A DNA stretch of 64,000 bases from Parasitella parasitica NRRL 2501 (GCA_025201805.1 MU619281.1:84094-148093), one strand, 5' to 3'. Positions 20,801 to 64,000 are shown, counted from the first letter of the stretch. Notes: generated by a model from the letters alone, not told the origin. Numbers and translations: made by a program.

Positions 20801-23365
20801 CTTTTATTTTCACCAAAAAGAAGTTGTTAGCAATTGAAAAAAAAAATAAAAGGTGTATATGTGCGCATACTGCTTAATGATCACTGGATCCAATAATAAC
20901 ACAAATAATATCGCCTGATACAATGGAAAGGCTGAGATCTTCCAGGTATTCTTGTCACAAATTGCATGTATTGCCTAATGTTTGGTTCTTATTTGGGAAC
21001 AGATATCATTGGCTTGAGATAAAGATTAATGCAACTCCCACGCAATTACCCCGCAAAAAAGTTAGAATATTTTGTTATAAACAAACAGCATGGGAGTACA
21101 ATGAAGTATATTTAAGCCTAAATATATGGTTGAAATGGTCGGTATTTTATGTGTATACAAATTGCACAAGAAATACATTACAGCAGAAGAAAAAAAACAT
21201 ATTAAGATGTGGGGAAAAATGTAATGTGTCACTGGCTAAAATTTTATGAATATATGTGTTTGAGAAATAATTATCCTTTTTGTTGTAACATGTTGCACAA
21301 GGCAAAAGTATGATATCGATATTATACCCACATTGCAAAATGCAGGCTATGTATATTCTATCGAAAACAGCAAACAAGCACAGCCAAGCTACCAGGCGAA
21401 TGTGTAAAAAAAGTGCAAACATTTGAGGCTTTTTACTGCGTTTTTGGTATGATACTTATTTTGCAAATTTTGTCAAATCCCAAAAAGGAATCATCAGCGT
21501 GTGTAATTTTAGTCCACATGATACAGTCCTATTTTATTTTACCCAATTTCTAGCCATGATATTGCAACTCATGCCTGTATAGTATAGTTTGGCCCAAGGG
21601 AAAACTATACGAGTGCACGTCGAACCAATCATCGCTATAGGCGGATATTTAAAGCTTGACCGTGAGTAAAGCAAATCTTGACGATACAAAACGAAGATGT
21701 GTATATGTGATGAAAGAAAGAAGGCACCAGCAAAGTATCACAAGAATGAAAAAAAAAAAAAAAAAGAGCCTGTATTCATATTATGCCCATGCTTTCAAAA
21801 GTCAGGTTTAGATGAAGATCTAAAATAATATACATCATTCAGCATATCAAATTTAAACCCACCCTTGATAATTTCGCACTTGAAACAAAAAGACTAGAAT
21901 CATACTATCAAAGAATGCTTTAGCGTTTGCTAAAAATATGACGAAAAGAAAAAGCTCGGCTTCTAAAATAGTACTAACCAACGGCAATAGCGATCTATAT
22001 GCGAAAGTTTTAGCACAGTTAAAATAAATTGAAGTAATATTATCATTGCATAAACCACAATGTTTTCAGTAGCTATTTTGAAGATTTGCAACCAGGGTTT
22101 ACTAAGATTCCATGTACTGAAGTTGTCCTTATGAGATGTATTCCTTCTTATCTTAATCTATCCGTAATGAGCGACAAATTCGATTAATCATGTTTGACAG
22201 GTTGTTGGATTGAGGTCTTTTCATTTTCACCAAATTCAAGATTAGGACTTCCAGGCAATGCATTAGCTCGTTGACTGTAACAGCAACACAGCGTCGTATT
22301 AAAAAGTTGCAGTTGTTTCAAGCGCAAACCGATATAAATTGATTACTCGGGTCCATTAGTAGGCAATAATTTCCGGAAATAAAGTAACAAATAGAGCATC
22401 ACTGACCTCGCGATCAACCTAATGCATTTCACAACGTGTTGTACTACCAAAAAAAAAAAGAAAAAGAAAAAAAAAGGAGAGTCTCTGCACTATCGTTATA
22501 TAGGAATATAAAGATCAATGTGATAGATTAAATTCTAAACCCTTCCTACTATAAGGGTGCAAGTAAACGAGGCGTGTTTTCATGAGAAGACGTCAAAGTT
22601 GAATATATTTTTTCTAACCATCTCAATTATGGCCTTTACGACGTACCAAAGTATATATTTGTAGAGAGCGTTTTCAGAAGATGGCCGATAAACTGAAGTT
22701 TTGGCCACAATCCAGAGAATAACTAGGAACATCAGTAATAGAAAAACTTGGATGAAGAGCTACTTGATAACCAATGCAAATAAGATAAGAGTAACTTTAG
22801 CACTTAATAGACTCTAAAAGCTCGGGATCTCGCTACATCAGAGCCATTACGGACAATGTACGCGAAAGATAAACAATTGAAGGTGGAGTTCTAAAGGGTT
22901 TGTATTGCAAGATCTGGAGGCCGGACAAACGCTGGTGCAGTACAAAAAGTGACATGTTGAGGATCTTATGAAATTAGATTCTTCTTTTCATCTGAAAAGA
23001 ATCCGTGTTGAGGTTTTTTGATTTTCCCATTTCGCCACTCCATCGTACTCCTTTAACGTGAGGTCCTTTTTTTTTTTTTTTTTTTTNNNNNNNNNNTTTT
23101 TACCTCAATTGTTCCATATTCGCTACAAATCTAAATAATCAATACATCTTTGCTCCATTTAGCACAGGAGGCATTGTATCAAGGGGGGAAACGTGGAAGA
23201 GATAAAAAAAAATTGTTTGTTTACTAAGTTATCAAGCTTGTAGGCTCTGCACAGTTTTTTCCATTTCGAGATGGCCCGGTTTTTCTTGCATTAGTATATA
23301 TAAAGCGCAACACTGGATTATCAATGGTCATGTTTCTCCTTTTTTGTTTACATTTACTTTTAAAA

Positions 23366-42919: not shown

Positions 42920-44191
42920 CTATACGATTCGGATATAGCTGTCCTGTCGGATTTCATCATTGCTCGAAATTAGAGCAGAGTCGTCTCTGGGCACATCAGG
43001 GCCAGAACTGGTAATCTTGATATTTCCATGATATGCAGATAATCTTGCTGGAATTGAAGGCGACAGGTGAAAGGAGCCTATTGCTTTAGGGCTATACATA
43101 CAAGTATTCAGATAATTAGTAAGAGCGTCTTATGCAATCCAACCAACGGCCTAAACTTACTTGACTATCACTGTCGTGACAACGAGCGTTGATGCCAGCG
43201 TGGTATCAAACATCAAAACAATGGTCATGGCCAGGTTCAGTTTACGGTATTGCGAAAAATACTCTCTTATAATGCTGTATAAGAATCGAATAATCGAGAA
43301 TGAGAGCAAACAAGTGATGCTGATGGACATGATCATGCGGGCCTATTGTAAAAAGTTAGCAACTTGCACCCTTTTTTCTTTTGATTTTAGTATAAAGATA
43401 ACTACTTTGAAAAGCCCATTTTTGATTTTTTCTACGGCTGCCAAATTGCCCACTTCAATTTGGCTGACCAAAAGCTGTTTCAAAATCTTGATCAGTCGTA
43501 ACCCAGCAAATAAAAGCCAAGCCGTCAATATAAGCCAATACACCAACCATTGGTAGTTTCGTGCATCTTCAAACTTCTGGGCCATTTCCAAATTTCCTTG
43601 CTGTATATAAAGAGCTGTCGCAATAAAGCAAGCATTGGTCGTAATAAACGGCAGCGCAATAAATACAGTGCAAACAACGTCGACCTTGTTGACTGACATT
43701 CTGTACCACCTACTTCCAATCTGCTCATTGCTCTATTATTTGTTCCCATTAGCTTTGTTATGTTTTACGCTATAAGCAACATAAAGTATATGCTTACACT
43801 GCAGATTGTATGAACAAGGCCAAACAAGTAACATGCATACGAACATGTGCAAAATTGCCACGGTAAAACTTTTAACACTATCCATACAATGAATTAGGTT
43901 GCTATAGAACACGAATGTTTACTACGTGGACAACTTACACTCTCTAACAAAGGAATTGGGTGCTGCTGCATCGGTGAGAGTGACGATGGTGTTTAATGTT
44001 CTGACTATATGTAGCCACGTTACTATTGTGTCAAATTATTGATCGATAAGGCCATGTATATTTACGCAAATTAAAGATGATCCCGAACAGCAGCATAGAT
44101 TCGATCGGTTTTGGTCGTAAAAAAAATCTATGTGGAAAATCGAATATAGGCAGCTTCATGTTGACTACTCGATGCCACAACAATCCTGAAC
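42920..44191 (-). CDS. Uncharacterised 7TM membrane protein, array copy 1 (exon 1 probably lost in the N gap at 44192-44406)
   Basis: GLLWHRVV..LPIFDF...RPKPIESMLLFG, LPWQF..CYLFGLVHTIC, GLRLIKILKQ, KNGLFKVRM, TLVVTTVIVNPKA. Same intron positions as the other copies. Confidence 0.8.
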
Positions 44192-46029
44192 NNNNNNNNN
44201 NNNNNNNNNNNNNNNNNNNNNNNNNNNNNNNNNNNNNNNNNNNNNNNNNNNNNNNNNNNNNNNNNNNNNNNNNNNNNNNNNNNNNNNNNNNNNNNNNNNN
44301 NNNNNNNNNNNNNNNNNNNNNNNNNNNNNNNNNNNNNNNNNNNNNNNNNNNNNNNNNNNNNNNNNNNNNNNNNNNNNNNNNNNNNNNNNNNNNNNNNNNN
44401 NNNNNNTTTCTCTCTTTCGGTTTGAAGATGAAAAGAGAAAGGATGAAATGAAAAATAAATGAAATGAGTTAATGAAACATGATTTGTAAGGGTCAAGGAG
44501 GTGAAAACAGACATTTCATTTAGCAGATATACCCTAAAATGGTCTATCATTGTTTGCATTTCGTACAGTTTTTGATTTACATACATGCTAATGTCACAGG
44601 TAAAAATTTCAGTAAAAAAAAAAAAAAAATCGTATAAATATAGTTTATTGAATTATTCATTGTTCTAATATTGAATGTCATCTGATCTAATATCGATGAG
44701 ACAATATGCTGATGGTTTGCTAATAAAAACAATGAATTAAAGTACTGGAGTGTGAAAAAGCCAATGATTTGTACTTTCATTGTGCAGATGCAGATATGTA
44801 GATAAAACTCTGCTTGCTTAAATTGGAAGTCAGGGTTTTTGCTGTACAAAACTAGATGCACCAGTTTTAAAAATGTCTTCTAATAGTACTCTGCTGCTTC
44901 CTTCTCAAAACAAAGAAACAAGAAGAAACACCCGCATTAGTGAGCATTCCTAGAAAAACATCTTGATGAATAGAGTTACCAAGGTTTTTATCTTGGTCCA
45001 CATCAGTTACCTACATCATTGATTGACACAGTAAAACCTGCAAAAGACAAGCCGCAAGGTAAAAAGAGTTCCATCAATCGCAAAACTCACCAAAGAGCAT
45101 AACGAATCTGTTAGACAATGACTCTCCTTGAAAATAAAGAAACGTGGGCTTTTGGTCTTCTTTGGAGCTAGCCGGCATGTACAGTTTGGATACTCATGTC
45201 TCGGGCTATCGACACATTTATAGACGGAACATGCTGTACACTGTCAAGAATGAGTTGCATAATGCTATTTTCGCGCTGAACTGAATTCAGAAAATTAGAA
45301 ACATATGGTACTTTTTCAGTGTATACAGTACACTCTTATCTTCCGATCTTATCGTCCATATCGGAAATAGCCTTTTTTAAAAAAGGCTATAAAAAAGAGG
45401 CTCAATTTGCGCAGCAATAGCTTTTTCCTTTTCCTTTTTCTCTCTCTACAACCGTTCGCGTCCAAACCGACGAGAGAACATAAGCATATTAAGCTCTCAC
45501 TCTCATTTGAAACCATCCTTCTAGTAAGGACAAGTCCCGAAAGATGATGTTGGCAATTCAAGTGTTACTGATCTTTTTGTCTCGAAGTCTTTCGCTTGAT
45601 ATCAGATCTTGAGGTCTGCTATCGGGTCTAGGGTTTAGCTTACGGATTTTTTAAGCTTGCTCTTTTGCCTGATATGTTGTTAGCTTCCTCGCCAAGTTTC
45701 TAAGAAACAATATTATATAAATATATGAAAATGAAAAATAAAGCGATAAATTGTAGCAGAGCAAAAGTAAAATCGATAATGTTTTGAGTATTAAATAAAT
45801 AGTTTAGTAAAGAGGTATATTATATACAAGGTTCACCGTTTTCTGTTGACCAAGTCAAAAGGGGCTATATCTGTAAAAACGTCCTCTACTCCACTATTAC
45901 TACACTATCTGCCAAAGTATCTCGCTTGCGTTCCGTCGCAGTACTTTATGGTTCAATATCTTTTATCGCGATTTTGCGGTATCCATTGCGTTGTGTTCGT
46001 CGTCATCTGCTATATGAATTCATCTATTG

Positions 46030-47081
46030 CTACGGTTCGTACCATACTTTCCATAGCGTCCCACCCCCTGTATATGAATGTGTTACTTGAGTTGCTTTCT
46101 GTCCCATTTTGTGCCCGCAGGTCTAAACCTAGTGCATTTTTTTTTTTCCAGCAACCAGCCGTATTCGCGTGCTTGCATTAGCCTCGACATGTTTGTGGTG
46201 TCCAACAAGAACCCTGATTTTTGATTCTGTTCCAATACCCTCGGCCTACAATCCAACCACCGGTAAATCAGAAGCCACATCTTCAAGCACGACCTCTCCA
46301 AAAGTCTCTGTACATGACGAGAAGGTGAAAATATCAGCCGATACATACGTAGTAGCAAGATCACCGCCTTGCAGATAACCCTGCAAAGGTGACAGGAGTC
46401 TGTCGACGTCTACCACAATCTTTTTGAATAGAGTCAAATGCAGAGCCATGGCATATGGGTGTGATTTATTTGCTTGTAGCTTGTCAGCACTAGCCCTAAT
46501 TCTTTTCGTATAAACCCCTTTTTTTACATACAAGATGACGACAAAAGGAATCGTACCAATTTCCTCTGCGTCTCCTCCCTTATCTTCAATCGATCTGAAT
46601 ACTGATGAAGTGAAACCATTACCGTATTAATTCCTCACGGGGCCATATCCGAAGAGGTTTGAACCTTTTTGTCGATAAGATGTGCCGTGTAGATACAAAT
46701 GGACAGGCTGTATAAGCGCAATAAGAGTAGCCGTATTGAGTGCAGTAAGTGTCTAAGTTTGTGTGATACGAGGGACGCTCTTGTTTTTGAACAAGCATGA
46801 AAATACAGCGCAAATATGAACGGGATTGACGAGGTGGATTGACATGCGGGTCGAATTCAAGCAGTTTTTCTGTAAAACCAGGTCTCCACAGACTCAGCTT
46901 GAGCCCGGGATAAGGCAGAAGGGGAATACTGGCATAAACGTCCATGTCATGTACTTTCGGGCACAAACACGATGACTGTATGACCTGTGGCTTGAAGATG
47001 TTCCCAAAAGCCTTGTCAGCGTCCGCGTATCACCATCGATTTTTAGGCATAGGAATTCTCCGTAATGATAGCGATGCGCAC
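46030..47081 (-). pseudogene. GT4-family glycosyltransferase (MgtA/PimB/SQD2-like) pseudogene
   Basis: VRIAIITEN..KIDG..RTLTRLL, IPLLPYPGLKL, SYHTNL, WPR, GYLQGGDLATTYVSADIFTFSSCTETFGEVVLEDVASDLPVVGL, scattered over three frames with stops. Confidence 0.8.
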
Positions 47082-47856
47082 TATTGTTTGAAGACTTGAC
47101 CCAATCGAGAAGGGCCTGTGTAATCATAACAGAAGAAAAACAACACGATCAAACAAGAGCGATTATTTCACACCCGCAATGCCGCCTTGAATTCTTGATG
47201 TTTCTTGAGTCGACGTTATCGACGGAAAGGCATCGGTCAGCAAATATCTGGCACTTTTCTTAACATATTATGGCGAAGCCCTTGAGTGTGCTTGGCGTTT
47301 GCTGCTTACCTGACCCAAGATCACATTATCGTTTTCTTTTTTATGGATCTGTAAGAGGATGACGGGGAAATTTCTACTCTTTTGTTTGCGATGTATACAG
47401 ATTGTGTTTGTGTATCGCTCATTGTGTGTAACAGATCAGTCTGTAACCGACAAGTGGCTCAACTCCCGATTATACCATCATGTTGTTCTTTTCCAGAGAT
47501 TCCTGTATGCCAAGACTGCTCAGGAAATAGGAAGGCGCTTACGTAGCGAGTGCTAGCTGATTCAGGTAGTGGGTACATGTTTGGCATCAAGTGATGGGCC
47601 TTTTTCCCACTGGAGCAGTGCATTGCCGCCGAGTCAATTGAGGCTGAAGGAACAAGAGTTTGACGCTGTATTAGGCATGAGCAATGTTAGATTCGTTCAT
47701 TATAATGTACCTGGTTTATTTTTACTTTTATTTTTATTTTATTTTTTTGTTGCGGAGTTGCCCAGAACGTAAATGTGTATAAATAAGTACAACGCAATAG
47801 AAAAAGAGCCCCTCTTTCTTCTTCTTTCCACTCTGGAGTATTTTGCAACAGTATCA

Positions 47857-50800
47857 ATGAAATACATCTGTAGCCTTTTGTCTACAATCCTTCTTTTTTC
47901 CATTGTGCAGTGTAAGTGCCCTCTTTGTTCTCTGTCTAGGTCTGATCTATTTACATCTGAATCAAACAGGTCACAGTGTGAACAACAAACAGCTACTGTG
48001 GGTCGAGCCGGTTTCAGCGATAAAACTGGACATAACACCACGCCCTGACCATTTCTTTGCAAAAAGAGACATATCGAAAAACAGCAACTACCAGCCCAAT
48101 GCTCGCTCCCTACAGTACGACGACGTGCTTCGACTGTCCGTCAGCGCCTACAACAAAACAATGTTCCTCCATTTGGCCCCTAATCTCGACTTATTCCACC
48201 CCAACGCCGTTTTCCACAGCAACGGCGTCTCCACAAGAGTCAACCCTGCTGATTTCAGAGTGTATCGAGGCTACGTTATTGACGACATATACTCTGATCA
48301 CTGGTGGATTTCTGGCTTACTGCAGGATGAAAAGGAAATGGAAAATCAACCAGGTGTGTTGGGCTGGGCTAGAATTGTGGTCAGAAATGATATAAAGTAA
48401 ATGGGTAAAAAAAAAAGCACGCAACCAAAATGCTGTATTAACCGCATAAAGTAGACATGATTTGGAACATCCTCTGTTCGAAGGCGCATTCACTGTCTAT
48501 GGAGACACTCACCATATCAAACTGAGGGACAACTATCAGCTAACAAAGCGATCGGACGACGCTGAGCTTGCACACCGAGACGCAGATATGGTCATGTACC
48601 GTGATTCTGACACGGTCCTCAAACAATTGGCTGAGGATTCACATAGTGGTGGCGAATGTGGTTTCGATAGCTTGACTCATATCTCTAAGCGCTCGTACAA
48701 TCCGCTCACCCTCGATTTTGACACAAGCAGCAATTTTGCAGTAAAGAACTCTTACCGCAATATTTTCGGCAACAGCGGTAAAACGCTATCCAAACGAGCT
48801 CCAGCTGGCTGTCCGACTTCCCAAAGAGGTAAAAATACATATAAACATTACACTCATAGACACACAAACAATTAACAGCGTAACTACCAGTGCTTTATAT
48901 GGGCGCAGCCGCAGATTGCACCTATGTAAAATACTACCAATCGGCCGATAATGCTCGTATGCAGATTATCAACGACTGGAATTCTGTGAGCTCGGTTTAT
49001 TCATCTACATTTAATGTCGGTATCGGCTTGATCAACATTACCATTATGGATTCGTCTTGTCCCACCACACCCGTCACTGCGACAAACTGGAACCAAGCTT
49101 GCTCTACCGGCTATTCGATATCATCCAGGCTGAGCGATTTTAGCCAATGGAGAGGACGCATCGGTGATGATGGTGCTGGTTTGTGGCATTTGATGACCAA
49201 CTGCGCGTAAGTAACAACACACTGCTTTTTAGCCGAAAACAAGCCCTCTAACTCGTTTTGGAAACAACAAAGCACTGGTGCCGAAGTAGGAATCGCATGG
49301 ATGAGCCAGGTGTGTAATACAGGTTCGATTAGGTCGAGCTCGACAGGCGAGTATACGTCAGGAACAGGTGTCTCGTCTATCAGTAAGTTTGCTTTCGTCA
49401 ATGTAGGCATGATTCGCTGACCAATGGATCCATAGTTCGGGATGAATGGAAGGTTGTTGCCCATGAAATAGGGCATGGCTTTGGTAAGAAATGGATGAAA
49501 TATTTAATTGATAACAGATAACCAACTTTTTTTTTTTTTTTTTTTAAAAAAAAATTTGTAGGAGCCATTCATGATTGCACTTCTCAGAGTTGCCCATGCT
49601 CGGGGTCAAGTTGCGGATGCTGTCCCTACAGTTCAAGTCAATGTGACGCAGGAGGAAAATACTTTATGAACCCCACCAGCAATGCTTCGTCTGACGCTTT
49701 CAGTCCTTGCAGCATTTCTACTATTTGCTCCAGCATGTCTGATTTTACAAGTTGTTTGGAAGGTATGCAATTTCCAAGCGGCACATGTATATTTTATAAG
49801 CGTCTAACAATATTACGTCTGTAGCCCCTGGATCAAGAAATACCACCTCTTTACAACAATGCGGCAACGGCATCAAAGAATCTGGCGAAGATTGTGACAC
49901 TGGTGGACAAGAAAGTGCTTGCTGTGATCCTAAAACTTGTAAATTCAAAGCTGGCGCTGTGTGCGAGTACGTTGTTTTCATATCAGAGACTATTATCGCA
50001 TATTAATTTCCATGAACAGTGATTTCAACGACCTTTGTTGCAACAATTGTCAGATTAGACCCGCCAATTACACATGCCGTCCTGCCTCCACCGAATGTGA
50101 TATTGCAGAAGTATGCTCAGGTACTTCTGGTGATTGCCCTGAAGACAAGTACAAACCCGACCTCACGGACTGTGGAAATGGCTTAAAGTGTGCTGCTGGT
50201 CAATGTACTTCTCGTGATAGGCAATGCGTGTCTCGTGGCTCTAGTATGAACATTTCAAAGGCATGCAGCGCTGACAGCAGCTGTGCTGTCATTTGCCAAT
50301 CGCCTGGGTCTGCCATGAGCTGCTATCACTTCCCTGGTTACTTTGTTGATGGCACGCCTTGTGGTCTTGGCGGTACCTGTAAATCCGGATCTTGCGATAG
50401 CAGCAACTTTGCTAGCAATGCCAAGAACTGGATTGACAGCCATCTGCAGATTTTCATTCCTGTCGCCATCGTCGTTGGCCTGCTGTTGCTGCTTTGCTTG
50501 TTCCGTTGTTGCTGTTACGGTGGCAGAGGAGGCTATAACAACATTGCAAAGACTACAACCTATGTCATCCCAGCACAGCAGTCGCAGCATTATCCCGCTC
50601 AATACAGCAACACGCAGCCACCTTACTATCCTCCTCCTACTGGACAGCAACCCTACTACCCTCCTAATTCCGGCTGGGTGGATCCAGCACAGTACAATGG
50701 CAGAGACGCAAACTATAGCCCTCAGCAACCTCTTCCGGTTTATACGCAAACTGACAATCACTCTAACGCCTACGAACTCAATAATGCAAATCAATGGCAA

Positions 50801-50962
50801 AGCAATAATCGTGGCATGGCAAGTCCTCCTATTCCTAGCTCTCCAGCACCAGGATATCAACAAATGCCCTCCAGTCCATCACCAGCGCCTGTAAATTCGC
50901 CTCCCGCTCCTCCGACGCACAACAACGGTGGCGCGAGACCATATAATGAGGGGGTCATCTAA
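47857..50962 (+). CDS. ADAM-family zinc metalloprotease (prodomain, M12B, disintegrin, Cys-rich, TM, Pro/Tyr-rich tail)
   Basis: Signal peptide; cysteine-switch-like ECGFD; AHEIGHGFG|AIHDC zinc motif; Met-turn YFMNP; CGNGIKESGEDCD and CRPASTECDIAEVCSG; TM helix IFIPVAIVVGLLLLL. Confidence 0.94.
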
Positions 50963-52261
50963 AATTTCTTATATATAGATTTCCACCACCCAAACCCCTA
51001 GAGCAACTTTATGCTTGTTGTTTTTCATTTCCTTGTATTTTTAGCTTATTTATTTATGCAACTATTCCCTCACTCTTATAAAAAGAAAGAAATACTCTGT
51101 ACAATGCAATGTATAATAAACGTGTACTTATGCGAAGGCAGACTCGCAACAGTTAAAACTTCTGATTGCTAGAAAGCAAATATTAGAGATACAATAAAAA
51201 TTGCTATCTGCATCATTCTAAAATTGATATTTTAAAGGTATAAAGTTTGTTAAGAATTCAAACAGTGATGAAATCATACAAAAACAAAATGGTGGTATGC
51301 TTGAACTCATAACGTAGACTTATTAGCGACGTCTTGGATTTGACGCAAAAAAAAAAAAAAAAAAAAAAAAAAATGAATCGAAAACAAGTTTTGACTTGAT
51401 AACTTATTTGCTAAAAGTACGGCCAGAAAGGTGTATACAGGTAGTTTTTATACAATGGCATTTCTCAGTGATACATGATAAAAATGTATATTTTTCGAAT
51501 GGTCAGGACCCCAAGGATTTATAAAGAGCGCACATTAATGCAATATATAATTATTTATTATCATTTTTTGGCCGTTTATTGTAGATAATACAGTGTTATA
51601 GCAATAGTCTGATGAGTATGATGGCCATTGTTGTATCATTAGATGCGCTTTTTAATAAAGTCGTATCGGGTACTCTTATGTTTCCTGTTTTTTTTACAAG
51701 ACACAAAGAATGGCGCATCATAAATACTGTAGGGTCCCCGTTTGTTTTGAAGAATGACACCCAGGTATATATATGTACATTAGAATCATTCAAGTTGTCA
51801 AGCACTTGATTATGTCCATTGCACAAACAATGAAACTTCAAGCGGCGTTTCCCTTTTAGGTTTTGCATTTTAGCTTCAAGATCAGCGTTATATCTTATAA
51901 TATACCGTAGTAATGGATCAAGATTAATAGAAGAGCCGAGTGTATAGAAACGGTTATTCCTATAATAGTGCGAATACTATGCAATTATATCACGAAGCTT
52001 ATTGAGACAATAGATAATTTACTATTTCCTTTCGTTCACGCATCGGTTATTTGATTTACATATAAAGAAGGATGGCCTCGTCCAAGCGACTCGCTTGACA
52101 TTCGCGTGATATATTATGTGTATGCAGACAAAGGGAAAAAGCATTATTGTCATATGAGGGGTTCATTGGAAAGTCGTTTTCTCTATTTAATGCCAAAGTC
52201 TATTCTGTTTCTACTATCTTCTTCATTTATTCACTCTTTTCCCTTCCTGAACATAAAAATT

Positions 52262-53624
52262 ATGAACCAAAATGACAACAGTGCATCGCATAGCTGCCCC
52301 TTGCAATTGAATACACTGGGTTGCATAAACGATGCACCTTTGCTACACATTTATATTACAAACATAGCATGGTCGTCAGCAAACGCATTGATAGGTAAGT
52401 GAATTTTCTATATATATAGTAAACACGGTGGGACATGGAGTAAGTGATTGACATTTCATTTACAGGCCTTGCTGTGCTATTCTACGGAGTGTTTAAAAAG
52501 AAACTTCCCATCTTTGGCAGTAGAGCTGCCTGTTCTATCAGACCAAGGCCAATTGAGTCTATGCTACTGTTTGGGTCGATTTATAACATGCGTAAATACG
52601 AATATAGTATCAAATGGGTAGAGATACCAGCATACTAATGCGACTACTTATTTAGTCAAAGCTATAGCTCAAGTTTTAACCATCACAAACAGTTACCCAG
52701 ATCCTATCTTCAAATCATGTATGTGCGTATATATAACTGTATTCACACATATGACCTAATAACATTTTACAGTCTTTGAAAACTTACCATGGCAGTTTTG
52801 CTATTATTCATTTGCATGTTATCTGTTTGGCGTTGCTCATACAGTCTGCAATGTAAGTCTGAAATGTGTATGTTTGTGCAGACTTAGTAACAAAAAAAAA
52901 CATTTAGAGCAAAGAAATTATTGGTGATAAACACCGTACATTGCCAGTGATCATCGACATTTTTTTCATCATGTTCACAATATTCCCATTCGTAATCACC
53001 AATACCTGCTCCATTGCAATAGGTGCTTTGAACAAACAGGGCAACTTGGGAACTTCAAAATATACTGACGCACTAAATTACTCATGGTTGCTGTATTCTG
53101 CTATATTAGCTTTGTGGATCCCATATGCTGGATATTTATTGATTAAGGTTTTGAAACAGCAGATAGCTAAAAATGAAAATAGACCCGCATTTGTCCAGAA
53201 TGTCAAAGCTGCCATGTTTAAAGTAAGTACCATACGTAACGGCTAATTTAAGAACGATAAAAGTACTTACTATTCCTCACACAGATTCTCATGACTATGC
53301 TAATTGCCATCGCTACCTTAATGACATCTATAATATTCGAAGTGCTCACGATATTAAAAGTGAATACTTCTCAAAACTACCACTTGACCTTGGCAATGTA
53401 TATCATCAACGCCTTTAATAGTACGTTGGCTTCTACACTAGTTATTTTGGCTATTCTATTCAAGTACGATTTATCACATTGTTTGAACTGTGCTGTTTAC
53501 TAAATCTTTTGATTATAGCCCAAAATTATTGACTCCTTTCGGCTTGCCATCCCCAAGCCGAGAAGAATCTGCTGAACATACTATGGGACTTGACAGTGGC
53601 ACTGGAATGCAAAAAGGCCCATAA
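52262..53624 (+). CDS. Uncharacterised 7TM membrane protein, array copy 2, 7 exons, intact
   Basis: CPLQLNTLGCIN, RPRPIESMLLFGSIYN, LPWQF..CYLFGVAHTVC, GYLLIKVLKQ, STLVILAILFNPK. Frame stays open after splicing. Confidence 0.82.
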
Positions 53625-55425
53625 ATCATCTGCAGATATAACTCACGAAATGTTATTATTGATCTTCTCATCTCCAATATGTATTATAATTCGCACAAAG
53701 AGTTAATGCATGTTAGCTGTAAAGCTATTGCTTCAATTGCACCAACAACACAGATACATAGTTCACCTTGATCAATACATCCATCATGTCTATATACTCG
53801 AGGTAGTATTCAATATTCTCTGATCCACCACTCTGCTAGTGCCTCAATCTCTTGAGATAACATAGTATAGAACACTTGTAAATATGATGTTTCGGACTCG
53901 ACGTCTAAATATTTTTCCCGTAGGTTAGTTTCGAATCATTATTTGTAAAAAGAAAATTAATATAGTATAATAAAATTCATAATGAGCTTTAATTAATGAA
54001 CATGAGGTTCAGGGTTCTTTTTCCTCGATGTATAAAATAAAAAGGGATTGTCCTCACCGACTACTAATTCGACAACCACAAATCAATTATCCTTGTGTTG
54101 TAAATAATGAAATTATTTAATGGTGGTGAGAGACGATTGATTAATCATGCGGGCTTCTTTATTAACCATATCTACTATTTTTTTTATTTATTTTTTTACT
54201 ACAAACGAGCTGGTCACCCTGCCCATTTTGGTGACTTTTGCACCTTCGCTATGCTGCGGTAAAAATCGACCATTGTTTACGCGGGGTCCATCTCGCTCTG
54301 CGAGGCAGCCAGTCTTTAAAATAAATAAGACTTATTGTTTTCAAGTGTATATGTTGTATCTATAAAATCCCATGGTTACCGCTCAGTTGTCATGGCAACT
54401 GTTCCTGATCGGATCCAAGGTTATAAGATATTTTATTTTCGACTCAGCTACAGCATTCTTCAAAACTATCAACCGCTCCTTACCACAGGCTGTTCATTTG
54501 CTGTCTTGGATGTTAGCTTACATCCATTCAAGGATTGGATTAAAAAATAAAGTATTTATAATAAGAAAATAGTATCATATCTATAACAATATGCGATCCT
54601 CTTAGCTTATTTAGTAAAAACGTTTTGTCCACCGTTTTTATTATTATTATTATTATTACTGTTTATCAAGTAAATCAATCATCATCAAGCTTTAGAAGTT
54701 CATTTACATTTTAGTTTGTGCCACATGTAAAATTAATTGTACTCGTTATAATCGTTTTATGATTGCGTGGCGATCGCCTGATTAGTTCTGCTCCAGAAAT
54801 AATGAAATTGGAAAGGGGATGCAAAGGGACTTTTTTTAAAGCAGGCTTTAGCACTGAGAAAACGTTGAGTGATTGCAATTAATTTCTGTAAACCTTGTCC
54901 ATATTTCTTTATCTATTACATTTGAGCAGTGTAAGATCTACCAGGAGCATCTCCATTTTATCGACGTCTGTTTGAAAGCTTTACCCAAAAACAGGAAACA
55001 AGGAACTGTCTTTGTTCAAGAATTGCTGTTAGCTTGTACGCAAACGTGGTTTAGTACTAGAATTACGTGCATAGATCAAAAGTTGATTCATTCATTCGAA
55101 ACTTTGTTTATTTACTATTATAAGCTTACGGTAAAGAGAGTGGAACATACATTCATCAGAAAAACGCGACACCTCTGCTTTCTTAAATTGAAATAAGTAT
55201 TTACAAAGGATTCCCTATACTTTGCTACAAAGAATTTGCAAACTTATTATACTTGCAGTAATCATATTCGCACTGTTAGGCTAAGAAACAATGCACGCCA
55301 TTTAAATGAAGCTTGCATTTATGCTCGAGGTTTCTCTTGCCTCCTTCCTTCCTCTTCTCTCTTTATCTTATTCTTTTTCCTTCTTCCAGCATATCCATTT
55401 GTTTTTTCTCTCGTACAAGGCTAGC

Positions 55426-56890
55426 ATGAATACTACTGAAGACGCCCAAAACAATGATTGCCGTCTATTAGTGGGTATTGTAGGCTGCGTAGACAGAGAA
55501 CCCATGGTGTACATATTTATTTCGAGTATTATCTGGGCATTTTTGCTGGCATTCACAGGTGTGTGTGTGTACAATTTTGATTGTTGATAGTAGTAATACA
55601 ACATGGATTAGCAATAAATTAATCCTTCATTAATACCAAACTATCAATAGGTTTCGCACTGCTATGGCAAAGAGTTGTTATCAAGAAACTACCGATTTTT
55701 GATTTTAGCTCATCACATATGTTTATCATCAGACCAAAGCCGATTGAATCTATGCTATTATTTGGATCAATCTATAATGCGCGTAAATACTCTATAATCA
55801 AATAGCAATTTTGACGGCATTTTAACATTACTATAGTCAGAGTTATAAATACAATATTGCTTCTTACTTGCGGCGCACCCGAGTCCGTTATTAGAACATG
55901 TAAATATATAGTAGACTTGTTCACATATTTAGACTCTAACCGCAATATACAGTTTTGGACTCACTGCCATGGCAGTTTGGTATTTGTGCTTTTTCATGCT
56001 ATTTGTTTGGCATCGCTCATACAATCTGCAGTGTACGTATGTCTCTCATTATTTGACATAATATGCAGAAAAAAACTAACGCATATATATATATAGAGCA
56101 ACCAACTCATTGGGAAAAGCTGGTACAGGAAATCATTCAAAATGGACGTAATTTGTACCCTCTTCATTGGAGTGCCCTTTATCATCCACAACATCTGCTC
56201 GATTGGATCAGCCGCAATTGCCGAACATGAAGTAGCTAAAGCTCTAAAAAATGCAGGGTATTATATCCTGTCAATTCATCTCTGCATACTGGCTTTTTGG
56301 GTTTTCGTTGCTGGGTTACAGTTGATCAAAATTTTAAAACAACATTTACACAATCAAATCGACGCTGGCGATAACGCAGCTATTGAAAAGGTCAAAAATG
56401 GCTTATTCAAAGTAATTAAATTCACGGTAAATCAATGAATATTGAAAATACTCACTGTATATCCCCACAGGTTCGCATGACAATGACCATTTGCATCGTT
56501 TCGTTGTTCATATTCGTACTTCTCAGATTCCTTTATTCCTTCCTAAATACGTATTTCTCACAAAACTACGCCTTAAACCTGGCCATGTCAATTTTGTTGA
56601 CCTATGACGGCATACTGGCATCAACACTGGTTGTCCTGACAGTAGTGTTCAAGTAAGTTTAAGTCTCTGATAAAACCCAATCGCTAGCTAACCTTTCAAA
56701 TATTTAGTCCTAAAGCTTTGAGCTCTTTTAATTTAACTTCCTCAAATCAGAATATGTCTGACGAATCTCAAATTGACAAAAGTGCTTTTACCACGACCAC
56801 AGATGACTTGACACTAATAACAAGTCGTTCTGAAACGCAAAAAGATAGTTGTAATTATAACAGACGATCATTCGATTATTCAAAATCACC

Positions 56891-56897
<7 letters not shown>
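55426..56897 (+). CDS. Uncharacterised 7TM membrane protein, array copy 3, 7 exons, intact
   Basis: CRLLVGIVGCVD, RPKPIESMLLFGSIYN, LPWQFGICAFSCYLFGIAHTIC, GLQLIKILKQ, STLVVLTVVFNPK. Confidence 0.85.
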
Positions 56898-56921
<24 letters not shown>

Positions 56922-58156
56922 CCCTTAATTGTACACATAGAGTTTAATCACATAGTTTGATGCCATCAGAACAGTGCCATTTAACGACTCCGTTTCATTA
57001 GGCACCTTGCACCGCAGCTCACATCAGATGGTGATGAAGTGCTGCATATTAAAGTGAAACTCTGCTGCCCCTGATGAGGTTCGACCGACATTTTGGAATT
57101 TATTATTCAAAATCAATAAACATATCTTAAATATTAGCGTAGTATTGTGGAAAATTTATATTCTTCGCCGAAAATCCATGAGTAGTTAGACCTTAGGGGT
57201 TTCGCCTTTAATCCCATATTTTGTATGAATATGCATTGAGTTTCGAGTAGTCCCTGCATGCATCTCGCCTATTTGCAAACTTTGATTCCTTACACCACGC
57301 ATAACGCTCAATCGCGCTTTCTTAGACACAAAATTATTTTCTATCACGAATCTATACGAAAAACGTTATCGAAGCCTGGCCATATATTTATATTCAAAAA
57401 TCTATGTGGTAGAGAGAGGGAGGGAGTATTAATTTATTTCAAATATCCAATAAGTACTGTTAACCCCCCCCCCCAGAAAGAAGCTACATGATGTGCACAT
57501 ATTCCATCAGATTACATCAAGCATTGTGCTCCAAACAAGTATAGTGAAAATAACAAACCCACCATGGTCCAGTTAGCAATATACTCTTGTCACGGAAAAG
57601 TAGGAGGTGCTTTCAAAACTCGGTAAACGAGACTAAAAGCGCAGAGTATAGCCGACTATACCTTTAATTTTGAAACAATGAAATTAGAGGAAGGAGCCCA
57701 AGGGAGTTCCATTTTACTAAGGAGATTTGATCAACATTTCTACATATAGTCTGTTTGAATGGTATAAGTTTTATTGGTAGCAGTTGATCATTGCCATTAT
57801 AACACTTGGTTGAGTGTGAACGCGCATTATAAAATTTATTATAACACCGAAAAACACTTCGCTAACAATAAAATAAAGTGAACCATAGAATATGTATTCA
57901 AAGGACAAGATGTACGTTTGATTAGAGCAAATGTAAACTATTCAAATCAGGCATAAAAAGGATATAAAAAATTCATGCACATGCTTACAGAAAGTTTTGT
58001 GATTGTATAATCAAAGACGCCAAGCTTTGCATTCTGATATGACAATTGCTGTACTTGCGCTGTTTAACTCAGGTCTTGCAGATCCTTATTTTAGCCAAGG
58101 TATTACTTGTCTCCTTCACTTCATATTTTGCTTTTTTTGTTTCAATCTGAACAAAT

Positions 58157-59581
58157 ATGAATAGTACTGAAAGCGGCTCCGGCAGTGGCTGCATGCTACC
58201 AGCAGATTTTATGGGCTGTATAGATAGGGGCCCTATGCAGTACATGTTAATTTTGAAAACCATTTGGGTATATATCTGGGCAATCGCAAGTATGGGACAA
58301 ACTGAATATTTGATAGCATTAGAAACCAATGAATTGATCCCCCACCCTTGTTATCAAAAAATATAGGTTTTGGTTTGCTTTGGCAAAGAGTTACCTTTAA
58401 GAAACTACCCATTTTTGATTTCAGTTCGCCATATATGTATACTATTATACCAAAACCAATTGAATCAATGTTATTATTCATATCCATATTCAATACACGT
58501 AGACATGCTATTAAAAACTGACACTATCTCGGCGCATTAATATATATATAATTGTGGCTAAAGACTTCCAGTACTACAGTGATCCTCAAGCATGGAAAAT
58601 CTACTTTCGTGATAAGAACATGTGAGCTTTTAACCGCTCATTTTAGAACTCATCATCTAATATATACCGATAAGTAGTGCTGAGAAACTTGTCATGACAG
58701 TTTGGCATTTGTCCATTTTTATGCCATTTAATCGGTATTGCCCATACAGTCTGCAGTGTACGCCTCAAAGCATTTACAGCAAAATATAGTGTAACTAGCG
58801 AGATCAGACAGAGCAACCAATTAGTTGGAAATAACATGAACAAAATATCGCTCAAAATCGACCACATTTGTTGCATCTCCATTCATTTGCTGTATCATCA
58901 CAGCTGTTGTATCAACTTTGTATGCTGAACAGGGCAACGTTCCAAGGGCCAGCTTGATCAAAGGAGTACGCAGTTTTATAATAATGCTGCACATCTTTAT
59001 CTTGGCTTGTTTTATTTTTGTTTTAGTTTTTATTTTTTATTTTTTATTTTTTTTTTTGCTAGATTGCGATTAATCAAGATTTTGAAACGACATTTACGCA
59101 ACAAAACAGAAGCAAACGTTGAATCTGTTGATAAATCTGGATCTCGAAAGAATACAGAATACTTACTATTATATAGGTTCACATGATTATGCTACTTAGG
59201 ATCATTTGTTATTTTCTCAGAATTTTGCATATCCTGCTACTTCGCTCTTTTTCACACAATACTATTCCAACCGTAGCTGCTTGTATTTTTTTGGTCTAAG
59301 ATAGTATTATAACTACAACGCTGCCCATCTTGACTGTTACGATCAAGTAATATTGCCCCTTGATAAATCAACTAAAGTGTTAAATGCATAGTCCTAAAAT
59401 ATTAAGCCCTTTTAATTTGAATTTTTTAAAACAAGAGAAGTTTTTTGATGCTAACGCTACTAGCTCTGATTTTATCTCTCGTGCAGGTGAATCCACTTTG
59501 ATTACTGGCCATTCCGGTGATCTAAAATGGCGATTACAAATTCCATAAACAATCTCCAGAGTCCCTATCATCTCAAGTTTA
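58157..59581 (+). pseudogene. 7TM array copy 4, pseudogenised
   Basis: CMLPADFMGCID and PKPIESMLLF are retained. PWQF has become S*QF (TGA at 58695-58697), with another stop at about 59297, indels and degraded splice sites. Confidence 0.8.
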
Positions 59582-60149
59582 AAAGAAATAACTAGATGTT
59601 ATTATTTAAAGCATAATTCAGTCTGAGAAAAATTACTATAAAAATTTGTGCCAAAATTCACTTAATGGCACAACTAATCTTGTATTACATTTCATCACAT
59701 AGCCCTTCTGGCGCCGTGATGGCGGAAATTTTGTCTTTTTCTTTTAACGCCTTTCGATTAATACGACACTTTTGACATTCTCTATGAATTTTATCAAGTT
59801 AATGAAAATATAACAGTTCTTTTGGTATGTTTTTAACAACTTGGGCACCTTGAACGAACCTTAATCCTAACCCTAAAAAAACCAGATAAAAATCAGGTAC
59901 CGTTTTAAAATAACAGATCATTTCAAGAATAAAAAAGTAAAACAATCTGAGACTGTTGAAGAGCGTATATTATTCTACTTTGCTTTGCAATTTTGCAATT
60001 TTATAAAAGCAATTCATAATAGTCATCAATGTATGCCGATCAAGTGAAAGAGAGGGCCACAGTAAAGGGCCTAATTTATATTGTCTAATGAATAGAAATA
60101 ATATTGCTGAAAATCAGCTAACTGCTAGAAGCTTTGTTGCATGTAGTTC

Positions 60150-60400
60150 CTGCGGATCTCACTCCAACAAATGTTGCCGATCGAACTAATCCGGTACCAG
60201 TAAGCGGTCAATTTAAGGACGCTGCTTACTGTTACACGATCGAATTTTGAAAGCGCCGCTTTCCACAGTATTCTTTATTCTGGACAAAGGAGACAAGCTA
60301 AGAACGGTGGAGGAAATTAACAGTATTGTTTCTGAAAATAATAAATCAAACCTTTATCCTCTTGCACACGAATCAGCAACTACTAACATGGTGCACGGCC
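60150..60400 (+). mobile_element. Helitron RepHel (HUH Rep domain) relic
   Basis: YTIEF*KRRFP then FILDKGDKLRTVEEINSIVS...LYPLAHE..TTNMVHG, resembling the Helitron YTIEFQKRGLPH...DKL...IDxIVSAEIP...MMHGPC region. Confidence 0.75.
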
Positions 60401-60913
60401 TCAAAATTGCAGTTTTTTATTCCCCTCTGAATGTTTATATAAGACCCAATACTACTACTATATGCACATTGATTAAAGTGATCTTGCTATAATTTTGTGC
60501 AAATTTAGCGATGGTAAATCAAACATCTGACTGGATTTGCTCGGAAACAATGAAATTTGAAGAAAAAAGTCTAGGGGGGGACCCTTCTAATGGCCTGCAG
60601 CACTAGGACAACATTGGTGTAGCACATTTCTGTAAAGATTATCATTATTTATACATTAATTATACAAACGAACAGTGCCAGTTTTGTCAATCACAATGTA
60701 TTCAAAAATACTAAATATTCAAGTATTTTCTTCAAAGAATTTAAAGTACTAAGCAATAGGGCTTTTGTTTTGTTTAGCTATTTTCTCCTATGCCAATATA
60801 TGATTTGAAAAATGAAAAAAAATGATAAAAAACAAACGTGATTTTAGTACAAATGAGGATTGTGTACATTTGCAAAAGTCTAGTATATTTGCCTTCCATT
60901 GTCATGTCGCCAT

Positions 60914-60916
<3 letters not shown>

Positions 60917-60982
<66 letters not shown>
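60917..60982. repeat. Poly(A) tract of about 66 nt
   Basis: Seen directly. Confidence 0.9.
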
Positions 60983-60983
<1 letters not shown>

Positions 60984-61296
60984 CAAAGCAAAGCTTTGAA
61001 ATGGAATACATGTGTATTTTTTAATGAGCAACCATGAGTGAATGTAAAAAGAGTTGAAGAGAAGTATGAGGATGTCCATATTCCGTTACACGCTATAATT
61101 CTCTAGTTTTGTAAAATTTAAAGCAAGATGGAAATGCATTGTATTGTAACCACACTTTGCATTGTTAGATTAAGAAAGAGTGTATCCCAATTAGAATAAA
61201 TATTGTTTTTATTTTCGAGATATGTCTTGCCTCCTTCCTCTTTATCCCATCCTTTTCTTTCTTTTTCCAACTTTTATCAAAACTTATATACACTAC

Positions 61297-62738
61297 ATGA
61301 ATCATACTGACCCCAATCAAAGCAGTAGCTGTGGAATATCAGTAGGCTTTATAGGCTGCGTGGACGAAAAGCCTATGGTGTATCTATTTATATCAAATGC
61401 TATCTGGGAAATTATTCTAGCGATCATAGGTGTGTAAGCAATTTTGATGTTGAGATGATAAACTAACATTTTTGCTGCTACAAAAAAAGGCTGGGGATTG
61501 TTATGGCATAGGGTTATCATCAAGAAAATGCCTATTTTTGACTATAGTTCGCCGTACATATTCATTATCAGGCCAAAGCCAATTGAATCTATGATTCTGT
61601 TTGGAAGCATTTACAACATTTGTAAGCTTGGTTTTTTTGAATAATACTTTGACAACGTGTTCACATAGTTTGCAGGCAGAGTTTTGAATACCATTCTCTT
61701 TCTCACTCATGCACCCGAAAATCTCATCAAAGCATGTAAATATTGCTCATGCACTCATCCAAATACATCCAAATATATAACTTACTGACTACAATCTCAA
61801 GTTTTAAAAGAGTTACCATGGCAATTTGGTTGTTGTTCATTTGCGTGCTACCTATTCGGCATCGCCCATACAGTCTGCAGCGTAGGGTTATATTGTCTGT
61901 AAATAGTATGCGCTATACTGACAAGTTTACCCAGAGCAACCAAATTTTTAAGGATAACTGGTACAAACAAGCACTAAAAATCGATATTATTTGCACCATG
62001 TTTATTGCATTGCCATTTATCACCAACAACATCTGTTCTATTAGTAAATTTGTATACACCCAGCAAGGCAACCTCAAGAAAGCTATATTATTTGATAATG
62101 TACTATCGATATTGTGGGCAACGCACATCTTCATATTGTCTTGTTGGATCTTCTTTGCGGGATTACGATTAATCAAGATTTTGAAGCAGCATCTTCGCAA
62201 CCAAATCGAGGCCGAGAATGCCGCAGCTATTGACAAGATCAGAAATGGCCTATTTAAAGTAGATCTACGTCGACATAAAGGGCTATGAAAAATACTCATC
62301 CACTATTGTACAGGTTCGCATGACCATGGCAATTTCCATATCTTGCATGTTGTCATTTATACTTATCAAATGCCTGCACGTCGTTTTGATCAAGCATTTC
62401 GCACATAACCGTAGCTTGACCATGGCCATGTCTACTATCCTGTTGCTAAATGGCACAGTAGCCTCAACGCTGGTAATCTTGACTATGCTAATCAAGTAAG
62501 TTTGAGCCCAGTTAAATTAAATCACTTGCTGACATGTCAAATATACAGCCCCAAAGCGCTGAGTTCTTTTAATTTTTTTTCCTCTGCCCAAGAAAGTTCT
62601 TGTGAATCTAACGCTGATAGCTCTTTCTTGTCCTCTCAGGCAGCAGATGAGTGCACCTTGATTGCAAGCCGAAAAGACAATTACAATATTCAAGTAGAGC
62701 TAGTGGACCAAACCGAAGAAAAGAAAGAACCCTGCTAA
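61297..62738 (+). CDS. Uncharacterised 7TM membrane protein, array copy 5, 7 exons, intact
   Basis: CGISVGFIGCVD, RPKPIESMILFGSIYN, LPWQFGCCSFACYLFGIAHTVC, GLRLIKILKQ, STLVILTMLINPK. Confidence 0.85.
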
Positions 62739-62972: not shown

Positions 62973-64000
62973 ATGAATCGTACACCACTGTTAAAAACTC
63001 TGTTTTTATCAATCTCTACAGGTAAAAGTATAACTCCATCTAAGCTACGGTCGTTGATGACTAAATTTCCTGCTACAGAATGCTTTCAACAGCGATCATA
63101 TGCAATTATGAGCCGAGCAAAACATCGAGCAGGCCTCCCTGTTGCACCAGTAACCTCTACCAGTACAAAGGCACCCAAAAAAGCAACAAGCAGGAATGCG
63201 AAAGCGGCCAAGGATGCTCTGAAATGGCGCACTACAGGATACTTTAACAAACAGCATGAGCATGCAGACGAAAAAACCACGCGGGCTTTATTGAAAAATC
63301 GATTAGAGAATTTGAATTTTCGAAAACCTGCAGACATCAGCGAACGATTGATCAAAGTGCAACCACAAAGCGAGATTGTTCAGCCTGAAAATCCACATTT
63401 ACTCAAAGTTGCTGTCATTGGAGCTGCCAATGCTGGAAAATCAACCTTGATTAACAAAATCGTAGGAGAAGAGGTAAGTCATTTTGACAGCTTCGGATAG
63501 GCAATTAACTGGTATGACAGGTGACGGGCGTATCACCCAAGGCACATACAACAAGAGAAAGGATTTTAGCTGTATATTCTCATGGTAATTATCAGATTGT
63601 ATTTCTAGACACTCCAGGTGTCATTCCTGACCACAATCATGCCAAGATGAATCGAACATTAGCTACTACTTCATGGAGATCTTTGGATGAGGCAGATCAC
63701 GGTATGTTTGCGCAGTGTAGGTCTATTTATGTCCCTGACGAGCTTTTTCCCCTTAGTGATGATTGTTGTGGATGCTGGTCGGTCTATTCAGCCTCAATCT
63801 CGTGCAGCTAAAGATTTCATATTGGATAGAATCAAGGATCTGAAAATTCCAGCTACGTTGGTTTTCAACAAGATGGATCTACTGCACGAGGATCGCAGTT
63901 TATTAGAGCAAGTCGCAGAAGAATACACTAACGGGTATCCTCGCTTCAAAAAGACATTGTATATATCAGCAGTCTATGAAGAAGGAATAGAAAAAGTCAA
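62973..64000 (+). CDS. Era-like (ERAL1) mitochondrial GTPase, runs off the window end
   Basis: Basic targeting-like N-terminus; G1 GAANAGKSTL, G2 VSPKAHTTR, G3 DTPG, G4 NKMD. Confidence 0.9.

Follow-up and report, generated by a model that had tools for sequence, protein, structure and literature searches.

An expanded family of unclassified seven-transmembrane proteins with a predicted receptor-like fold in Parasitella parasitica

The window analyzed in this work is a 64,000-nt stretch of the genome of Parasitella parasitica NRRL 2501 (MU619281.1:84094-148093), and positions given below are window positions unless a contig is named. It carries five paralogs of one protein family: copy 1 at 42920-44191 on the minus strand, and copies 2 to 5 beginning at 52262, 55426, 58157 and 61297, all on the plus strand. 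The best explanation, to which we assign a probability of roughly 60%, is that these genes belong to a lineage-expanded, unclassified seven-transmembrane (7TM) family of Mucoromycotina that has the G-protein-coupled receptor (GPCR) fold and is receptor-like. A receptor role of the family is in itself probable to about the same degree, and the proteins would presumably be located at the cell surface. A preliminary description of the window had proposed a five-copy array of an orphan, GPCR-like family under birth-and-death evolution. The five diverged paralogs were recovered by alignment of the DNA and transfer of exon borders; the count of five holds for the window, and a sixth array copy lies about 6 kb beyond its end.

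Gene structure in the window is of the eukaryotic kind, with short exons. The MAFFT alignment of the five genomic regions consists of similar blocks parted by short unalignable stretches, each of which starts with GT and ends with AG. The exon borders of copy 5 were set by hand and then carried to the other copies through the alignment. Copies 2, 3 and 5 each have seven exons, an open frame and six GT-AG introns of 53-92 nt (53-66 nt in copy 5). Intact copy 2 encodes 333 amino acids (aa) in exons at 52262-52394, 52466-52591, 52656-52718, 52773-52852, 52908-53222, 53285-53463 and 53519-53624; intact copy 3 encodes 364 aa at 55426-55558, 55651-55782, 55837-55899, 55953-56032, 56097-56411, 56471-56652 and 56708-56897; and intact copy 5 encodes 366 aa at 61297-61429, 61490-61621, 61676-61735, 61802-61881, 61935-62258, 62314-62495 and 62549-62738. 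The exon lengths differ between copies by multiples of three only and the six intron positions are common to all copies, so the intron phases are identical as well. Exons 2-7 of copy 1 were assigned through the alignment to 44191-44066, 44004-43939, 43877-43798, 43732-43406, 43342-43161 and 43091-42920 (including the stop codon) on the minus strand; the visible 316 aa are open and all visible introns are of the GT..AG type. Protein identity among the array copies is about 37-55%, with copy 2 the most diverged (37-40% to the others). In tblastn searches, exon 5 of copy 5 found the other copies at E-values of 1e-13 to 1e-35, and copy 4 at about 1e-8, which excludes chance likeness. These models agree with the preliminary description in four respects: three intact copies with six introns at identical positions and phases, a visible part of copy 1 that conforms to the other copies, one inverted copy (copy 1) and one dead copy (copy 4).

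Copy 1 adjoins an assembly gap of 215 N (44192-44406) and its readable sequence begins precisely where exon 2 starts (44191). In copies 2-5, exon 1 and intron 1 together span 193-225 nt, and no exon-1-like coding sequence was found in the 2 kb past the gap (best E 0.08 over 10 aa), in a search whose positive control found exon 1 of copy 3 at 1e-10 to 1e-33. Because the span matches the gap and no such sequence lies beyond it, exon 1 and intron 1 of copy 1 are most likely within the gap, across which the continuity of copy 1 is not shown by the assembly. The far flank of the gap is CT-rich and resembles the leaders of copies 3 and 5. Copy 4 (58157-59548, plus strand, by the same alignment and border transfer) is a transcribed pseudogene with several lesions: a TGA at 58695 stands in place of the invariant W of PWQFG, the intron 2 acceptor is lost, exon 5 is frameshifted, contains a T-rich insert (about 59019-59055) and has lost its end by a deletion that also removes the intron 5 donor, and an additional stop is found at 59297.

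The sixth copy, P0001, was detected in the whole-genome profile search (G000:C45:152976-154463, plus strand, corresponding to L001:4883-6370). It encodes 386 aa and is the sole array copy with a full-length public model. Public Parasitella proteins (BD408DRAFT locus tags) map to family loci at 93-100% identity. Copy 1 is annotated only as the 215-aa protein P0002 and copy 3 only as the 213-aa protein P0007, each with a start Met within exon 5, and no counterpart of copy 2 or copy 5 was found among the public proteins in the searches for relatives. The truncated models of copies 1 and 3 and the missing models of copies 2 and 5 indicate that exon-poor gene callers undercount the family.

The fold was predicted by AlphaFold2 for P0001 with an alignment of 30 sequences. 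This protein stood in for the array in folding and docking; the tool searches were run exon by exon, and exons were joined only for translation, alignment and tree construction. The model, with a mean predicted local distance difference test score (pLDDT) of 79.7 and a predicted template modelling score of 0.77, contains helices at residues 24-55, 75-99, 110-143, 150-184, 188-234, 237-273 and 282-308, followed by helix 8 at 311-322 and a disordered tail. In a Foldseek search of the PDB, the top 50 matches were all GPCRs (Smoothened, endothelin, FFA2, rhodopsin and others), with weak E-values of about 3e-3 to 2e-2. An exhaustive search with VIA-align also returned GPCR-fold chains for all of the top 50 (Z 19.8 to 16.6), with 220-289 aligned residues, a root-mean-square deviation (rmsd) of 3.5-5.2 Å and 6-11% identity; these Z-scores lie above the stated background for helical bundles. 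Among the matches were MRGPRD, CB1, GPR6, S1P receptors, FZD1, TAS2R, GPR155/LYCHOS and a designed GPCR-like fold. A transporter or an enzyme would have contradicted the preliminary description, and neither was found among the top matches. A sliding Kyte-Doolittle scan gave overlapping, unusable segments, and the helix limits of the AlphaFold2 model were taken instead. With these limits, Lys and Arg residues numbered 11.3 per protein in the inside segments versus 1.3 outside, and an N-x-S/T site (N-x-T) is present at residue 2 of copies 3, 4 and 5. From the charge bias and the N-x-T sites, the N-terminus is predicted outside and the C-terminus inside. We concluded that the family is predicted to have a GPCR fold of seven transmembrane (TM) helices plus helix 8, in line with the 7TM topology claimed at the outset. 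An opsin reading was rejected, as no Lys was found in the aligned TM7 segments and no microbial rhodopsin among the fold matches.

The motifs named in the preliminary description were all found in the spliced copies: C-x7-GC, RP(K/R)PIESM, PWQF..CYLFG.xH, LIKILKQ..KNGLFKVRM, an NP after TM7 and a Ser/Thr-rich tail. Conservation by segment was calculated from seven Parasitella paralogs with the helix limits of the AlphaFold2 model. Cytoplasmic loop 1, which holds RPKPIESM, is the most conserved segment at 61% identity, followed by TM3 (58%) and TM2 (56%); the least conserved are outer loop 1 (18%), outer loop 3 (22%) and the tail (22%). The outer loops, which are short, are 18-42% identical versus 61% for cytoplasmic loop 1. 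An acidic motif, [DE][DE]x[TA]L[ILV], is kept in the otherwise diverged C-terminal tails. It fits the dileucine signal [DE]xxxL[LI] in copy 1 (43091-42920), copy 3 (56708-56897), copy 5 (62549-62738) and the sixth copy, and copy 2 is without it; [DE]xxxL[LI] is a classical signal for lysosomal or endocytic sorting. Beyond the Parasitella clade, the Mucor relatives and the long-type relatives were seen to have a longer N-terminus with four cysteines (FWxxC...CHCDWR...C), of which the Parasitella copies retain only the two of C-x7-GC. The retention of only two cysteines suggests that the outer cap has been shortened in the expanded Parasitella clade.

The size of the family was estimated by searching a profile of 30 relatives over the 32.8 Mb assembly, which gave about 15 loci. 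Short-type loci are found on contigs C45 (six), C193 (two), C21, C14, C66 and C34 (one each), and long-type loci on C15, C135 and C11 (one each). Four of the about 15 loci are pseudogenes: copy 4, the C66 locus (rearranged, with one exon on the opposite strand), the C11 locus (with in-exon stops) and the C34 locus (a fragment). The two members on C193 form an inverted pair 12 kb apart (G000:C193:9710-10914, minus strand, and 22195-23361, plus strand), and the C14 member (G000:C14:340265-341052) is a recent duplicate of one of them. That duplicate and its C193 source (C193b) are the youngest pair, with a nonsynonymous rate (dN) of 0.06, a synonymous rate (dS) of 0.11 and an overall dN/dS of 0.53. 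By eye, the differences within the pair seem to bunch in outer loop 2 and TM6, and in both members a PRVFA-type sequence has replaced PWQFG.

A maximum-likelihood tree (LG+C20) places the nine open short-type copies of Parasitella together in a single clade (support 100/100), whose sisters are the lone orthologs found in Mucor plumbeus and M. lusitanicus. Copy 3 pairs with copy 5, and long-type proteins from other Mucorales make up the second half of the tree. Branch lengths in Parasitella greatly exceed those in Mucor. At protein identities of 37-55%, the synonymous sites of the old copies are saturated. The spacers of the array are unalignable apart from about 125 nt upstream of copies 3 and 5, where a CT-rich element (55258-55380, plus strand) is 72% identical to its counterpart (61146-61268, plus strand). 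The duplications are therefore not datable from the flanks; the divergence of the spacers would fit an old age of the array. Birth-and-death evolution, as first proposed, is a fair description of the family, given its tandem duplicates, its lineage-specific clade and its four pseudogenes. The proposal of a lineage-expanded receptor cluster is supported: the expansion appears in the nine-copy clade and the GPCR fold in the model, and every outcome named beforehand as contrary to it failed to appear. The receptor function is still a matter of probability.

Relatives were sought with exon 5 of copy 5 in a phmmer search of 1.84 billion representative sequences, which returned 84 proteins, about 390-516 aa long in full. 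The named relatives all come from Mucorales or Umbelopsis and bear the label hypothetical; to judge from this search, the family is restricted to Mucoromycotina (Mucorales, Umbelopsis), across which its motifs are conserved. The UniRef automatic name of the Mucor cluster is 'G-protein coupled receptors family 1 profile domain-containing protein', and that of one Lichtheimia member is 'family 2 profile 2'. A literature search on the Mucor ortholog accessions, on GPCR surveys of Mucorales and on Parasitella found no paper on the family. The word 'orphan' in the preliminary description is thus apt in that the family belongs to no curated family, and too strong in that it has 84 relatives across Mucoromycotina, some of which already bear automatic GPCR names.

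Transcription was examined in one small public run, X1, which is kept as contigs and whose RNA status was guessed by the tool; it was compared with 6,000 bases of the region, with most of copy 5 lying outside. Contigs of X1 match the region at 99% or more. Two joints, 56652>56708 across intron 6 of copy 3 (56653-56707) and 58289>58367 across intron 1 of copy 4 (58290-58366), remove GT..AG introns exactly as modelled. The copy 4 contigs run through introns 2, 4 and 6, which fits the lost intron 2 acceptor and a decaying transcript. No X1 contig was found for the 5' part of copy 3 or for exon 1 of copy 5, which in so small a run proves nothing. We concluded that at least copies 3 and 4 are transcribed and spliced; lack of expression of every copy, which would have spoken against the preliminary description, is not what these contigs show. 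Two further X1 contigs were noted in the spacer between copies 3 and 4 (57202-57359 and 57563-57772), where no gene is modelled; they may represent an untranslated region, a non-coding transcript or DNA carry-over.

Next, the family was compared with known receptor classes. The Pfam library includes models for STE2, STE3, Git3, Dicty_CAR, 7tm_1 to 7tm_3 and PTH11-type proteins. Single exons of copies 2, 3 and 5 gave only noise against Pfam, and no consistent match was obtained for 10 and later 30 full-length relatives at E-values up to 10. In particular, Ste2, Ste3, Git3, Dicty_CAR and PTH11-type models had no match among the 30 members at E up to 10 or among the window exons. PF00001 (7tm_1) had no hit in the 30 members or the family loci, and no locus in the genome reaches the 7tm_1 cut-off. 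These results bear out the earlier view that the family cannot be assigned to the Ste2, Ste3, Gpr1, cAMP-receptor or PTH11 classes. By the sequence methods used, the family, GPCR-like in its predicted fold, is placed in no class.

The likeness to class A GPCRs (7tm_1) is structural. Both have seven TM helices plus an amphipathic helix 8, an N-terminus predicted outside in the family, an Asn-Pro that closes TM7 on the cytoplasmic side before a helix 8 with Phe, and a Ser/Thr-rich tail, and structural matching is best with class A chains (Z 17-20, rmsd about 4 Å over 250-270 residues). However, the identity is only 6-11%, DRY, CWxP and the Tyr of NPxxY are all missing (AHT occurs close to the DRY position), and the family has invariant motifs of its own, RPKPIESM and PWQFG..CYLFGIAHT. 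The established fungal classes (Ste2, Ste3, Gpr1/Git3, cAMP-receptor-like, Stm1/PQ-loop, PAQR, PTH11 and GprK) are likewise 7TM proteins thought to sense the environment, but the corresponding Pfam models match 0 of the 30 members at E 10. PAQR proteins, moreover, have the opposite topology, and PTH11-type (Fung_rhodopsin) proteins reached a TM-score by query of only 0.43 in the ESM Atlas. The family also has parallels with chemosensory arrays such as vertebrate TAS2R and V1R or nematode Sr genes, which likewise show tandem and inverted members, pseudogenes, lineage-specific clades, a conserved inner face and a variable outer face; TAS2R is among the structural matches. Unlike those arrays, the family has a small repertoire (about 15 loci) of old duplicates at 37-58% identity, and its ligands and chemosensory role are a matter of conjecture.

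Coupling to G proteins was approached by docking. The genome contains at least 12 G-alpha loci; twelve G-alpha subunits were reported in Mucor circinelloides, the largest set in fungi, with no receptors known for them (PMC6936849). Residues 1-330 of P0001 were docked, with no custom alignments, to the Mucor Gi-type G-alpha P0138, which is 97% identical over its C-terminal half to a Parasitella gene on C148. The pair scored 0.48 versus 0.00 for the best of three controls, with a contact agreement of at least 70% across runs and a partner pLDDT of at least 73. The docking mark applied is reached by 51 of 78 solved complexes and by 2 of 108 mismatched pairs. Scores of 0.60 or below comprise 5 of the 78 solved complexes and all 4 passing mismatches (of 180), so that a pass in this range is more likely false than true, except where the pairing was probable to begin with. 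Docking to G-alpha had been named as a check in the preliminary description; the pair beats all three controls, but its score falls in the unreliable range and argues weakly for binding. As many GPCR-G protein complexes have been solved, such a pass may show likeness rather than binding. The docking raises the odds of G-protein coupling of the family by a small amount, to somewhat short of an even bet.

A mechanism can be proposed for a receptor-like family of this kind. The proteins would be embedded in the membrane with a short N-terminus outside, on which there are paired cysteines and, in some copies, an N-x-S/T site. A small ligand would be sensed by the outer loops, which evolve fast, and by the upper helix bundle, and the conserved inner face, formed by the RPKPIESM loop 1, CYLFGIAHT at the inner end of TM3, LRLIKILK...KNGLFKVRM between TM5 and TM6, and the NP with helix 8, would pass the signal to a single shared partner in the cytoplasm, for which a heterotrimeric G-alpha subunit is the most plausible candidate. 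The tail, acidic and rich in Ser/Thr, may serve through its [DE]xxxL[LI] motif in desensitization or endocytosis. The short-type gene, single-copy in Mucor, has multiplied in Parasitella to at least nine open and three dead copies in the manner of chemosensory genes. A stronger version of this proposal, that the family is a true new GPCR class born in Mucoromycotina which feeds the large G-alpha set and supplies Parasitella with a chemosensory repertoire for hosts or trisporoid-type signals, we consider unlikely at present.

Several points weigh against the receptor-like explanation. The sequence methods all fail to connect the family with a G-protein-coupled class, and it lacks DRY, CWxP and the Tyr of NPxxY, the switches of class A. 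Language-model features also point towards the endomembrane 7TM proteins THH1/TOM1/TOM3 and GPR137. The fold was predicted for the sixth copy and not for a window copy. The weak docking pass may be the model's memory of solved GPCR-G protein complexes, and several proteins with a GPCR fold, for example GPR155/LYCHOS, do not couple to G proteins. The evidence of expression comes from one small run kept as contigs, and long-branch attraction could inflate the monophyly of the fast-evolving Parasitella copies.

Some of these points converge on the most serious alternative, in which the family has a GPCR fold but no G-protein coupling and consists of 7TM proteins of endomembranes or the vacuole, comparable to GPR137, THH1/TOM1/TOM3 or GPR155. 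Proteins of that sort would act as scaffolds, nutrient or lipid sensors or trafficking regulators, with an inner face that binds another partner. THH1/TOM1/TOM3 and GPR137 (PF06454, PF27607) are eukaryotic seven-helix proteins of similar size and are the nearest named clusters by ESM Atlas language-model features (0.90 for THH1/TOM1/TOM3 and 0.88 for GPR137_N). GPR155/LYCHOS chains are found among the structural matches at Z 16.8-17.5, the tails of copies 1, 3, 5 and 6 carry the acidic dileucine-type motif, and the class A microswitches are missing. However, the shared Atlas features (165 or fewer) are below the range typical of one family, and profile searches give no support: PF06454 (THH1/TOM1/TOM3) matched nothing in the genome at E <= 1 and had no hit by hmmscan of the 30 members. 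Those families are low-copy endomembrane proteins, and housekeeping 7TM proteins of this sort usually evolve slowly and do not normally form tandem arrays with pseudogenes and variable outer loops. The docking to G-alpha, which beat all controls, also argues weakly against this alternative, which we regard as rather unlikely.

The family could also derive from the class C (GABA-B-like) GPCRs of Mucoromycotina as a strongly diverged branch; the proposed receptors TAR1-3 belong to that group. Class C candidates specific to Mucoromycotina, including the candidate trisporic acid receptors TAR1-3, have been described (Mondo et al., 2017; PMC5705715), and only one Glutamate-type receptor was reported for Rhizopus (Krishnan et al., 2012). 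Like the family, TAR1-3 are GPCR-like and restricted to Mucoromycotina. When PDB sequences were searched with the family profile, human GABA-B receptor subunit 2 matched marginally and co-linearly at TM7 (E 0.013, 17.5 bits), and TM1 was aligned to TM1 as well. The score of this match is carried in part by the Ser-rich tail, however, and when the family profile was compared by hhalign with a 207-aa 7tm_3 exon taken from this genome, the probability was 0.2%. PF00003 (7tm_3) matched four or five other loci of the genome and none of the family, and the 30 members are without a hit. The family has neither the 7tm_3 signature nor the large ligand-binding ectodomain of class C, as its N-terminus is short. 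Identity with TAR1-3 was rejected on motifs, since these proteins have a class C motif of the 'AKNYRIY' type and none of the motifs of the family. A class C origin is thus very improbable. Still less credible is the idea that the copies are functionless decaying repeats, relics or chance open reading frames: copy 4 and three loci elsewhere are indeed pseudogenes, the public protein models lack copies 2 and 5 and truncate copies 1 and 3, and dN/dS of the youngest pair is 0.53, but three window copies keep 333-366 codons open with 18 of 18 splice-site pairs intact despite 37-55% identity, the motifs are conserved across Mucoromycotina, splicing is observed in X1 contigs, and conservation is structured by membrane side.

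Other features of the region were recorded. Long A runs occur in the spacers, about 75 A between copies 4 and 5 (60906-60999) and about 30 A after the stop of copy 3 (56887-56932); the read comparison passed over them as repeats. A multi-exon ADAM-like gene (47903-50962, plus strand) lies between copies 1 and 2; it encodes a reprolysin propeptide and domains of the M12B metalloprotease and disintegrin types, then a hydrophobic segment and a tail rich in Pro, Gln and Tyr. An Era/EngA-like GTPase gene (MMR_HSR1; 62973-63811, plus strand) is found directly 3' of copy 5, between it and the sixth copy.

Parasitella parasitica is a facultative mycoparasite of other Mucorales, and trisporoid signals also guide its choice of host. 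To our knowledge, almost no receptors have been assigned to the G-alpha proteins of Mucorales, and we know of no receptor identified for the trisporoid pheromone. A family found across Mucoromycotina that has no Pfam model and is predicted to adopt a GPCR fold is a candidate new receptor class in fungi. Its single-copy ortholog in the genetically tractable Mucor lusitanicus, from the P0085/P0111 cluster, would be a concrete gene to delete and to test in reporters, and the expansion in Parasitella, with its variable outer loops, may serve as a natural series for asking what is sensed.

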